Shown here piece by piece: positions 21,042 to 27,763 of a stretch of 33,444 nt of DNA. A program made the position numbers and the translations under genes. Below the pieces are notes generated by a model. That model ran no database searches, was not told the DNA's origin, and worked only from the letters and a program-made list of their open reading frames with translations. The DNA comes from Pelomyxa schiedti (taxonomy: Eukaryota; Protista; Evosea): NCBI GenBank assembly GCA_020536535.1, contig JAHLWZ010000982.1:1-33444 (forward strand). Reading direction: 5' to 3'. The first letter of the stretch is position 1. Every line of letters starts with the position of its first letter.

Positions 21042-23074
<2,033 letters not shown>

Positions 23075-23325
23075 CACCAACAATCAATCAACAAGCAGAA
23101 CAAACAATTAATGTTGATAAAAAAAAACCCAACTTGGCAATTTAACCAAGCGAAACAAAGTTGTCGGACTAGCGCTCCGAAAAAATTGAACCACTGACGT
23201 AAAGATCTGTACGAGTTTTCTGAGTCTGCGTCAGTTCTTGGAGTTGCAAAAATAAAAATAGTTTCCGATTTATAAACATTTTAAATTTGATTTTTGATAA
23301 TTTCCGTAAAACCAACAACCCAAAC

Positions 23326-24530
23326 ATGGACAGGAAGAGAAAACCTACAGGTTTTGCCTTTTATGTCACTTCGATAGACCGCGAACTGTACGAGACTCGT
23401 TCAAGAGACCTTTCACAGCGAAAGGTCTTCGAACATGCCGTACAGGTTCAGCGGATTACGATTTGCTTCCCGGACGAGCTCGAATCTATATCGTGCATCG
23501 AAATGTGGATGCACGCTCAGGGATTCGAACTAGCATTCGGGAGGTTACATAGCACGCGATCCATCCGCTTTACTACACGTCTTCGGTATTACTCACATCT
23601 TCACAGCGACTGACTACTCAAGTGAAGGATCCTCGAGCGAGACCTCTCCTGCAAAGAGCCCTTCCCGCAAGCGAACCAGACCCGACGGGGTGAAAAAGCA
23701 AATGGAGAAGTTGGGTGGACGGTTCTGCAGAGAACACCTTTACACTCGACTTCCACGTACTGACATGGAACGGAACTTATTGAGCCCAAGTCCGGCTTAT
23801 TCGTCATACTATGAAAGCTCTCCTAAGAGTTCATACCAATCTAAGCAAGACTACCGGGGATTCTGGAGGATTGGATCAACAACTCAGCACTCTCAGACAG
23901 GCCGTCGCGTGATCTGCTGTGTGGAACAGCCATCAATCGGCAACGGGAACTCGGCCAAGGACTACCTCCCACTGCTGTGCAAATCCTGGCTGAAGGTTTG
24001 CAGTGAATTCGATGCCTCTGTGGATCCTGGTACAGTCCTGCGCCTGTCAACAGGGGAACCACTCACCGAAGACAACTGTTGCCTGATAAATGAAACCGAG
24101 ACAGGGAAGGGCAAGCTAGGATTCCAAGGAAGATTGTACCTGAGAGTGTTTGTGAAGAGCATTGACTCCCCTACATCCTATTCCTGGGTCAGGACTCCTA
24201 TGTGCATAGGTTACTCTTCATGTTTTCGTGTTCGAAGGTTGACCTGTTGATTTAGTTACCGATCCCTCTCTCGAACATCAGTCTGCAGTTCCGATGCCTG
24301 CCCAAGTTTTGGATCCGTTCGATCTTGGAACTGTCATTCCTCAGGAATTCAACAGCTTCCCTCTTGGAGTTGCCTTTACGGATTCACTGGAGTACAGTGG
24401 TTTGTTTGGCACATACCCAGGGGCCATTGGTGTTCCTTCCCTGAGTGGAGAGTTGTTAACAACCACTGATCCCCTGGGGGAGTCAGAGTACCAAGAAAGT
24501 GATTTCACACCACTGCCCCTCACTCCCTGA
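23326..24530 (+). CDS. Orphan protein of about 300 aa (basic NLS-like N-terminus, acidic C-terminus); exons 23326-23350, 23607-24209, 24256-24530
   Basis: CAAAC-ATG start; phase-1 introns 23351-23606 and about 24210-24255 join MDRKRKPT/ATDYSSEG..RKRTRP.. to ..SWVRTPMCI/VTDPSLEH..PLPLTP*. No recognisable domain. Confidence 0.65.
23362..23552 (+). ncRNA. Candidate intronic structured RNA: two long hairpins followed by ACA (H/ACA-like, unassigned)
   Basis: Hairpin 1: CCGC/GCGG, GAAC/GTTC, TGTACG/CGTACA, GTTC/GAAC, AGACCTTTC/GAAAGGTCT. Hairpin 2: GCTTCCCGGA/TTCGGGAGGT, CGAATC/GATTCG, CGTGCATC/GATGCACG. ACA at 23547-23549. Confidence 0.5.
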
Positions 24531-24863
24531 ACCACTATACTGTAAAGCAATGTAAATGAAAAGAAAGGTTGTTTTAAGTTACCGGTGCTCCCACCAGCCC
24601 GACTCGTCCCTATAAATAATTCCAGTGAGGGACGCGGAACAGTTCAGGGTGGGGAAAAAAATAACGAAGTTGGGCGGCAGACTGCGGCCGGCGCAACGGT
24701 AACCCGAGAGTGCTCATTGTGGGTCTTGCTAAATGTGTCCTCTCAGCAGAAAAGTTGTGTCTCAGGTTCCCGGGATACTCGACAGGATTAATTAATTAAA
24801 CAAGTCGAGCGAGTCAACGGTGAGTGGCGAGACGAGATCTGCGGAAAGACGACAAGTATAACG

Positions 24864-27763
24864 ATGGACAAAGGCAAAGAGGGGGACGATGGTGCGGTGG
24901 TCGACGACGGTAGTGGCGGAGATGCGTCTGCTCACAATTTTCCGGCCCCGGCGACATCGCAATCTCCTGTGAACGATAGTGACAAAATGCTGCTATCGTA
25001 TCGGCCTGGCTTTTCGCTTTCGTTTTGTACTTAATGTCTGCCAGACCGTGCAGAAAACGCAAGAAAGGGGACCCTGCCAGAAAGGGCGACATTGAAGTAG
25101 TTCCATTCCCAAGGGTTACCAATATGACTTGTGAAACACCTCCGATTCTAGAAGGAAACACTTGTTCTACTGCGGGAGAAGTTGCTGCGGATTCAAGTAC
25201 CCAAGATCCAATTCCTCCGTCAACGTATGCCTTCCTCTTATTTCTTGTGGCCGAACATTTGCAGGGACGACGACTCCTCTGACAGTGATGAAGATGAACA
25301 ACTATGTAGAACGCCTTTAAACTCAAACACACATTCCCCACAGTCCCCCGAGTCCAGCGATTCAGAGGCCTCAACAAATAAGCCCCAAGAGGGAGTGACT
25401 GACTCTGGGCAAAGTAAATTGATGAATTCAGTCTCTTATTTAATGCTTTCAGAGTTCAGAGTTCCTCATACCAAAAGCCCGTTGCCTCTTTATAGTCCCC
25501 TTCGTTGGACTCTTTTTGACTGGCTTAAAAGTAGCTGTCTACTCAGCGTTATTTTATTATTTTTGCCCCTTCCTCGTTGGGTAGGTTTGCTCCAAATCCT
25601 TTTCGTATTACCCTGGAAAAAGGTATTAATCGTTTGGTTCGGGATTTGGAGACTTGCTTACAACTTAGGAATAGGATTACTCCTTAAGTACAATTCCAAC
25701 TCGTTGTATGCCTTTAATCATGGACAGATACCAGTCAGAAAACAAGGTTATCACAAAATTTACACAGCAGATCCTGTCAAAACCGAACAATATGTTATAT
25801 TCAATTGCTAAAACCGCGGCCCACGTTGACGTAGATAACGATTACTCGTTTGAGGTAATTGCACTCATTTGGTGTAAGAGTTAATCCAATACATAGAGTG
25901 CACCACCAAGTTTGACAGCATGGCTACTCTTTCGGCCAGTGGTTGATGTGATACTATTCTACGATGTAGTAGCATACTTTGTTTTTGTGCTAGGCTATTG
26001 GTACTGACGGAACTTATGCGGGGCCTTACCAAACACAGGACTGCTCCGGCCCATTTCTTTTCTCTGAAAACCCTTCTCTCTTACATTGGGGGAGTCTTCT
26101 TGTGCTTCTTTGCCTTGTGGGCAAAGACGGACTCTTTCAGAGTTGTAAAAGACTATGCTTGGTGTAATACTACCTATTCTTGAGATGTGAGTAACTGTGT
26201 AACAGACTGGGGGGATTTTTTCTTTGCAATTCATCAGAAACTAACCTTTGATCGTGTATTTCGCATAGCGCCACATCCCATGTACACAATTGGGTTCGTT
26301 ACAAAGACAATTTATCTTTTTCTCTCTCTCTAATTCCTTTGTCAGATATGCATTCTTCTACGGATTTGCTCTGCTAACACACTCGTATATTGTTCTTTAT
26401 GTGAGTTTGGCTGCACATGTATGTCAGTTGGTATTCCTTGCTTTAGTTGAAACCCCGCGTATGTCTTCATTTTTTCAAGAAATTCTCTGTCTAAGGAACT
26501 ACTAGATATGAAGAAAATTTACCCTGAAATGGTTGGAGATTCCTCTTACAAATTCAGTGGTGGTGCTTTGCCCCGCTCCCTAGTCGGGTTCGGAAATTTC
26601 ACACCTTACCGGGGCGTGGACCTACTTTTTATGGTGTTTGTTGCACAAAACATCGTTGTCCACATAGTCCTAATTGAATCCATCCCGACTTGGGTTTTTG
26701 TATGTATGTCATGTTTTCTTTTCCTGCAACTTTCCTCAATTTCATTCAGGTGAAGTTCTATTCTGGCGACTGTGGCTGAGTGGGGTTCTTGGACTCGTGT
26801 TACATTTACAAAGTAAGAGTAATTGGTTTGTCCTCAAGTGTGAAAAAATGGGAATGAATACTGCACAGGCTTTTGACAACTGGAAATTGTAATCCCTTAA
26901 CTTATAAAACTTGGGTAACCAAATTACAGAATTTACAACGCTGCCCACGTAATGACATACGTTTCATTCTTTTGCTGTGCCGTGAAGTACAGTGCCGGTG
27001 TCACCTTCCAGCCCTATTGTGTTGCTCAAGTATTAGCGTTGGTTTGTACAATACAATTTGAATTATCACTAAATTCCCAAAAGGTCCTTTGTAGCATAAG
27101 CCTGTGGTGTTCTCTTTCGACATACGAAGTTCTAGGAGATTATGGCTGGTTTTATGGTGACTTTTTCATTACATCAGCTGTCCCAGTACCAGTGGTTTAT
27201 AGCGGAATATACAGGTTCACAATACAGTTTTCTCCTCGCTAATCACATACAGATTTATGGACAATCCAGACAGCATCATTGGATGGGGAGGTTTTTATGG
27301 ACTGGGACTATTTGCTGAGAGCAAAACAGTGGTACTACTTGCTGCTATCTGCCAGGTCATCAACTACCTGTTTATAGTTTTCGTGGAGAGGTAGCACAAC
27401 CTGCACGAACCATAACCTAACATTTACACTAGTCCCCACATGAGGAAGATTCACGGTGGTAAACTACGGCCAATTAGCGGCATACAGAGCGGCGTCACTG
27501 ATATCTTCCTGGATATGGTCGAAAAGAATCCGAGAATACAAAAGCTCAATAAGAAGGCAAGAAGGGAAATAAGCAAGTAAGAATCTACCTCCCTCCTTTC
27601 AAATTTCTTCCACCCCCACACAACACCAAACTCATTACAATTCAGGATCAAGAAAAGAATAACCACGGAGATCAAGGGCCTGAGCATACACGACCGCATT
27701 GGGCTACAAAAAGCCAAGTCCACACTTTTTGAGAACCTCCTACTCAAGAAGAAGAAGAGCTAA
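24864..27763 (+). CDS. CHO2: Phosphatidylethanolamine N-methyltransferase, fungal Cho2/Pem1 type (two PEMT repeats), multi-exon
   Basis: Spliced motifs [80 protein letters not shown] and a second repeat [34 protein letters not shown]. Ends KKKKS* (KKXX ER-retrieval-like). Confidence 0.88.

Follow-up and report, generated by a model that had tools for sequence, protein, structure and literature searches.

The first intron of a Pelomyxa-specific gene (Pelo_15005/Pelo_15064), at positions 23351-23606 of a 33,444-nt stretch of Pelomyxa schiedti DNA (contig JAHLWZ010000982.1; hereafter the window), folds into two long hairpin arms and carries, on the opposite strand, a pair of internal promoter boxes of the kind found in transfer RNA (tRNA) genes. 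Comparison with a diverged paralogue argues that this intron is genuine and supports the idea that its structure is under selection. To account for the whole, we tentatively favour a structured, tRNA-derived RNA of about 245 nt that would be made antisense to the host gene by an RNA polymerase III (pol III)-type unit nested in a real intron. This explanation is put first because it is the only one that joins the conservation of the boxes, the layout of the T runs and the coverage seen in RNA libraries.

The paralogue, Pelo_15333 (contig C1005, locus L031), was located using exon 2 of the window gene as the query. It is diverged from the window gene, with a synonymous divergence (dS) of 0.77 and fourfold sites 59% identical, and is organised in the same way: exon 1, again of 25 nt, is near-identical, the structured intron, of 269 nt, opens with the same 12 bases, and the acceptor and the start of exon 2 are shared. 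Within a 16-codon block at the start of exon 2 the two genes differ by seven synonymous and two non-synonymous changes. Upstream of this exon, the nearest in-frame stop lies at 23531 and no ATG occurs between 23531 and 23609, nor is there one in the paralogue; the conserved exon-2 peptide, having no start codon of its own, could therefore be produced only by splicing exon 1 onto position 23607. The intron reads GTTTTG at its donor, followed towards the 3' end by UACUCAC and CACAG. Both predicted donors of the gene begin with GTT (GTTTTG at 23351 and GTTACT at 24210), and all four RNA-verified introns nearby begin with GTA (A at +3). The RNA data came from the three single-cell libraries of the genome's own study, used as contigs; no spliced 23350/23607 junction was present in these three runs, which hold no exon-2 contig at all, and splicing of the sense intron is thus a conclusion from coding conservation. 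An earlier note, made from the letters of the window, had described this stretch as an oversized intron among small ones, a description that agrees both with the conserved exon 1, donor region, acceptor and coding exon-2 start of the paralogue and with the lengths of the four verified neighbours (40, 47, 51 and 135 nt).

Folding of the 256-nt stretch gave -87.8 kcal/mol on the plus strand (z-score -5.3, with none of 200 dinucleotide shuffles as stable) and a z-score of -5.0 on the minus strand, while the arms alone gave -7.7 and -8.4 on the plus and minus strands, respectively. These values lie far from those of the shuffled controls, well beyond chance; the structure is therefore real, and the two arms that the earlier note had outlined, at 23371-23461 and 23465-23545, were recovered by folding at exactly those positions. 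Its further argument for a sense RNA, from an excess of G-U pairs on the plus strand, fails for the window copy, since the two strands fold equally well and G-U pairs number six on the plus strand and five on the minus. The TATGT/ACATA helix that it had placed at the base of the arms can form but is not part of the minimum-energy fold.

Both arm tops have been kept through compensatory changes between the paralogues. In arm 2, the 8-bp top differs by three double changes with no pair broken; in arm 1, the 9-bp top differs by four double changes if aligned without gaps, or by one together with a paired 1-bp indel if gapped, again with no pair broken. Taken ungapped, the two tops show seven double changes in 17 bp and none broken, whereas controls slid out of register were 16-59% paired and had no double changes. 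A shuffle control is weak with two sequences (66/500 and 34/500), and the two helices are independent. These changes support the view, drawn from comparing the two copies, that the intron structure is under selection. Below these tops the arms diverge between the two copies, as do the closing helices. The paralogue intron as a whole folds with a z-score of -4.0 on the sense and -2.2 on the antisense strand. On the minus strand, RNAalifold proposed a stem joining the 5' and 3' ends, with one compensatory pair, while single-sequence folds favour a local hairpin.

Short direct repeats were also seen in the window intron. A 10-nt sequence across the acceptor junction (23600-23609) is repeated exactly in the arm 1 loop (23412-23421), and one of 8 nt across the donor junction (23346-23353) is repeated within arm 1 (23441-23448). 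Of these acceptor- and donor-junction repeats the paralogue retains just CACAG, in both places.

Turning to the minus strand, a type-2 promoter was defined as an A box and a B box on one strand, spaced about 43-45 nt from start to start. A strict textbook A+B pattern at tRNA spacing had 17 matches in the genome (52 Mb) and none with the pattern reversed as a control; the minus strand of the paralogue intron is one of the 17. Seven of these matches were fetched, four of which were called as tRNA genes, with most of the others tRNA-like by sequence. The window boxes match a relaxed pattern built on the tRNA invariants, which had 50 matches in the genome versus two for the control. Of the 11 A-box positions, 4 differ between the paralogues, and none of these is an invariant one; by our calculation, the chance that all four differences would fall on degenerate positions is about 1 in 330. 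On the minus strand of both copies, moreover, the first T4 run past the boxes comes immediately after the hairpins, inside exon 1, and runs of T4-T5 lie downstream of tRNA genes in this genome. A tRNA gene proper was rejected, because neither copy adopts a tRNA fold: ARAGORN found no cloverleaf in the window or the paralogue, and no tRNA match was obtained with Rfam.

Two RNA contigs map to the locus (23318-23491 and 23343-23587), both unspliced over 23350/23351. In none of the three runs is there any RNA coverage between 23634 and 24949, which leaves the downstream exons untouched, while the flanking VPS4 and PEMT genes are spliced in the RNA contigs. The second contig begins at the first T of the T run (23343) and ends a few nucleotides upstream of tRNA-like position 1 (23587). 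RNA that covers the element and not exons 2-3 is awkward for a pre-mRNA, and its inclusion of exon 1 means that it is not an excised intron product; such a pattern is natural for an independent antisense RNA. We infer that these contigs stem from a minus-strand transcript of pol III. One contig differs from the genome at two sites (A>C and A>G, at 23455 and 23490), both unpaired in the fold, probably reflecting variation between strains or alleles.

The proposed mechanism is as follows. Nearly the entire intron would be occupied by an old unit of tRNA origin lying antisense, and we suggest that the intron is long for this very reason. The A box (23575-23565) and B box (23531-23521), at tRNA spacing, would drive type-2 transcription by pol III through a highly base-paired body composed of the two long hairpins. 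Transcription would stop at the first T4 run (23343-23340), within exon 1, and the predicted product, an antisense RNA of about 245 nt, would be the RNA seen in the libraries. Its role would most plausibly be a paralogue-specific control of host splicing or transcription, proposed because neither copy has parted from its host.

Several observations weigh against an antisense pol III product. The libraries were poly(A)-primed and single-cell, and hence less than ideal for pol III RNAs; their contigs are strandless, with ends that do not mark those of the RNA and a depth of about 3, reads running through into adapters occur, and one contig extends 22 nt beyond the first T4 run. The U6 genes of this genome end in at least 10 T, so that T4 may be a weak stop signal, and no TATA-like sequence was found upstream on the minus strand. 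The window A box fits the relaxed pattern only, and that pattern was written after the sequence had been seen. The covariation comes from two sequences only, and the folded core of the paralogue is more stable on the sense strand (z -5.6) than on the antisense strand (z -3.0).

Table 1 Features of the host gene and of the element in its first intron, in window coordinates.
Feature	Position	Strand	Remarks
Exon 1 of host gene	23326-23350	+	ATG plus 22 nt, MDRKRKPT, phase 1; 24/25 nt as in paralogue, the single change synonymous
First intron, 256 nt, GT..AG	23351-23606	+	Paralogue: 269-nt intron at the same place, same first 12 nt, same CACAG acceptor
Branch-point-like UACUCAC and CACAG acceptor	23590-23606	+	Read from sequence; paralogue has ACUAAC equally far from acceptor
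Exon 2	23607-24209	+	First 95 nt coding, without in-frame ATG
Second intron (predicted), GTTACT donor	24210-24256	+	Links the frames of two open reading frames; agrees with annotated protein P0003
Exon 3, TGA stop at end	24257-24530	+	From open reading frames and annotated protein P0003
Hairpin arm 1, 36 bp	23371-23461		Top helix 23406-14/23420-28, 9-bp perfect stem, 5-nt loop
Hairpin arm 2, 28 bp	23465-23545		Top helix 23492-99/23508-15, 8-bp perfect stem, 8-nt loop
Small palindrome across donor, 6 bp, 4-nt loop	23340-23355		Includes minus-strand T4 run; stem sequence kept in paralogue
tRNA-type A box	23565-23575	-	Four differences from paralogue A box, all at degenerate tRNA positions 11, 12, 13 and 16
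tRNA-type B box, within lower stem of arm 2	23521-23531	-	tRNA-gene spacing to A box
First T4 run past the boxes, candidate pol III terminator, inside exon 1	23340-23343	-	Next T4 at 23308-23311
Predicted antisense pol III-type unit, about 245-250 nt	23340-23590	-	From boxes and T run; RNA contig X3 at 23343-23587
Union of two RNA-library contigs	23318-23587		Contigs carry no strand; unspliced across 23350/23351

The main rival, less probable but serious, is that the structure acts in cis in the sense pre-mRNA, where it would draw a long intron together or control access to the weak GUUUUG donor and so allow splicing, and that the boxes are the fossil of an inserted element. This would fit a real intron with a weak donor, and a donor covered by a 6-bp palindrome. 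It would also fit the better folding of the paralogue on its sense strand, where a closing stem of 5 + 7 bp around the structured core leaves 5 + 62 nt unpaired; in the window copy the folded core is followed by a 61-nt unpaired 3' tail. The zipper stems of yeast introns provide a precedent (PMC12350175, PMC2536676, PMC12311795). However, the closing helices of the paralogues are not homologous, that of the window being weak and made with other partners, and the adjacent last intron of VPS4 (22838-22972), at 135 nt and without structure (z -1.1), is spliced in 3/3 RNA runs, which indicates that folding is not required for long introns here. Action in cis also leaves unexplained the retention of the invariant A-box and B-box positions and the limitation of RNA to the element, with none on exons 2-3.

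An antisense pol III gene and a sense structure acting in cis are not mutually exclusive. A more elaborate arrangement, which we regard as improbable, is that the same 250 bases are used twice, as a sense intron that has to be spliced and as an antisense, tRNA-derived pol III gene with its terminator in exon 1 and an RNA perfectly complementary to the donor site of its own host, giving each paralogue a private antisense regulator of its splicing or transcription. An arrangement of this kind would explain the lasting association of host and element and their covariation.

Slightly less probable still is a relic without function, left by a tRNA-derived or foldback insertion older than the gene duplication, its stems kept by template-switch (quasipalindrome) correction and the RNA contigs being stray unspliced pre-mRNA. 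Consistent with such a relic, the element occurs in a single locus family with no further copies, identity across the intron as a whole is near the neutral 59% of fourfold sites, and loop conservation (4/5 and 6/8) is not above that neutral expectation. By contrast, seven paired changes without one-sided breaks in 17 bp speak against it, the perfect boxes of the paralogue would by our estimate have about a 0.5% likelihood of surviving neutral decay at this divergence, and both copies have retained their intron length in a genome of tiny introns.

That the hairpins are instead translated, as in the public model P0003 (359 aa; Pelo_15005/Pelo_15064), is a very improbable alternative. In this model an exon at 23326-23543 is followed by a 78-nt intron at 23544-23621, and the hairpins become a 64-residue insert; the frame is indeed open and the RNA contigs run continuously over 23350/23351. 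Nevertheless, the paralogue does not conserve the insert peptide, its nucleotides covarying instead as stems, the annotated acceptor CTCAAG is CTCAAA in the paralogue, an RNA contig is also unspliced over 23544, and nothing credible was found in Pfam. The earlier note had correctly stated that the retained intron is stop-free in frame, but an open frame of this length is not significant (p 0.05 here, 0.16 in the paralogue). The public annotation, with hairpins translated as protein, is thus probably wrong. The paralogue Pelo_15333 is annotated from an internal methionine only, and the 5' ends of the Pelo_15005/15064 and Pelo_15333 models look wrong.

Least credible of all is the idea, raised in the earlier note, of a sense small RNA precursor hosted by the intron, either a divergent box H/ACA small nucleolar RNA (snoRNA) or a tandem pair of microRNA precursors: the hairpin-hinge-hairpin layout and arms of 81-91 nt would suit it, but an H box, a conserved ACA and pseudouridylation pockets are all absent, and the RNA contigs include exon 1. 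In particular, as the earlier note had recognised, the hinge has no ANANNA (23455-23468, both strands). After its second hairpin the paralogue has nothing that corresponds to the ACA at 23547-49, and the RNA contig continues past this ACA to 23587. Internal loops measure at most 5 nt per side in both arms, leaving no pocket, and three permissive Rfam scans returned no match at E up to 10 for the locus or the paralogue intron. Membership of the box H/ACA class was rejected on these grounds. Overall, the intron and the folded structure described in the earlier note have held up and its snoRNA has not, while the promoter boxes on the minus strand and the unspliced RNA confined to the element had escaped it.

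A dispersed repeat, such as a short interspersed element (SINE), a miniature inverted-repeat transposable element (MITE) or an introner, was also rejected. Searches of the genome by BLAST, using the whole element and each half, and with a covariance model of arm 2 found only the window copy, an identical duplicate of it and the one paralogue, and a pattern search with the head motif identified no repeat family. A 16-nt pattern from the donor region was matched exactly by the two paralogues and the duplicate alone, and a metagenome scan with the conserved exon 1/donor block gave no match.

Resemblances to other structured RNAs were likewise set aside. The minus-strand GUGUAGUA resembles U2 small nuclear RNA (snRNA) by chance, as no model match was obtained here and 33 canonical U2 genes lie elsewhere; likenesses to the U5 loop, the Alu domain of the signal recognition particle and the CR-I of ribonuclease P, noticed by eye, were dropped since none had a model match. 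Canonical U1, U2 and U6 genes were located elsewhere in the genome and have in common an upstream element, CCCAYAAY, at about -55 to -62 (derived from 23 loci). No copy of this snRNA element is present near the locus. The nearest match in the window is an orphan, CCCACAAT, at 24716-24723 on the minus strand, between the host gene and the PEMT-family gene.

The assembly of the P. schiedti genome used here comprises 52.37 Mb in 5337 contigs, in line with the 52.4 Mb in 5337 scaffolds of the genome paper (PMC8887013). Window positions 21851-25106 are 100% identical, over at least 3256 nt, to positions 8332-11587 of contig C977 in the opposite orientation. This duplicate is probably assembly redundancy, and explains why the host gene has two protein accessions (Pelo_15005 and Pelo_15064). 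Upstream of the element lies VPS4 (identified by eye from translations of the open reading frames), whose last two introns are 51 and 135 nt according to the RNA contigs; downstream, the remainder of the host gene is followed by the gene of the PEMT family.

The host gene belongs to a family of at least five genes in P. schiedti (window 23702-24530, L031, L034, L035 and L036), of which only the two paralogues described above carry the structured intron; the element is absent from the more distant paralogues on contigs C448 and C1228. With the host exons searched separately, Pfam had no family for the protein, and relatives were found in P. schiedti only, with none in other species among 1.8 billion representative proteins. 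The AlphaFold model of the host protein is poor (pLDDT 61) and yielded no match with Foldseek.

Other units with perfect A and B boxes and no tRNA call by ARAGORN were seen in the genome, at C352:17653-17706 (L055), C507:31921-31974 (L056) and C512:38177-38226 (L059), two of them with T6-T7 runs 45-50 nt downstream. From their sequences these three are candidate tRNA-derived small RNA genes. A further unit without a tRNA call, at C968:2716-2768 on the minus strand (L060), is AT-rich and tRNA-like, with a 7-bp acceptor-like stem and a T9 run, and the flanks of its A and B boxes resemble those of the window element (15/18 and 12/14). We treat all four as leads and not as support for an antisense pol III gene at the locus. 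Given such units, the present case may be one member of a broader class of archamoebal small RNAs that has yet to be described.

If upheld, these findings would correct a public gene model in which RNA hairpins are translated. For protists there are few documented cases of a structured intron maintained by compensatory evolution, and the window intron would add one, in a genome whose introns are tiny. The locus would also provide a candidate nested gene, in which a tRNA-derived pol III RNA lies antisense within an intron, with a concrete promoter, terminator and predicted ends.

Among known systems, the element is closest to the tRNA-derived ncRNA genes (non-coding RNA genes) of pol III type 2, such as BC1 and the SINE-derived RNAs and, by layout, the vault and adenoviral VA RNAs, which combine internal A and B boxes with a strongly paired body and an end at a T run. 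Like BC1 and the SINE-derived RNAs, it has boxes at tRNA spacing, no decoding cloverleaf, a paired body and a T run at its end. Unlike them, it occurs at a single locus and in one diverged paralogue with no dispersed family, fills an intron in the antisense direction, places its T run in a coding exon, and has a use of pol III that is predicted. The TMERs of murid herpesvirus 68 are pol III units in which a tRNA-like head is followed by two hairpins and a T run. The window element can be compared with them in all three parts, although its head does not fold as a tRNA and the 3' half of that head is one strand of the first hairpin.

The likeness to a box H/ACA snoRNA extends to two hinge-joined hairpins in an intron and stops at the missing H box, conserved ACA and pockets, the earlier note having found no ribosomal RNA target either. 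As in the zipper stems of Saccharomyces cerevisiae (PMC12350175, PMC2536676, PMC12311795), pairing within a long intron can bring the donor near the branch point, possibly through mutually exclusive pairings; the window intron, however, consists mostly of two autonomous hairpins and not of one stem from donor to branch point, and its closing helix is not conserved between the paralogues (strong in the paralogue, weak in the window). With the nimtRNAs, nuclear intronic tRNA look-alikes that act as splicing enhancers (PMC7722341), the element shares a tRNA-derived sequence in an intron and a proposed effect on host splicing, but these have kept the cloverleaf and need it for their effect, whereas in the window element the cloverleaf has been lost and the tRNA-like head is antisense. 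Finally, a survey of mammalian MIR elements described intronic, antisense SINE units transcribed by pol III (PMC5381342), which like the unit predicted here lie antisense within the intron of a protein-coding gene. Those are copies of an abundant repeat and mostly neutral, whereas the window element is unique and its hairpins show compensatory evolution.

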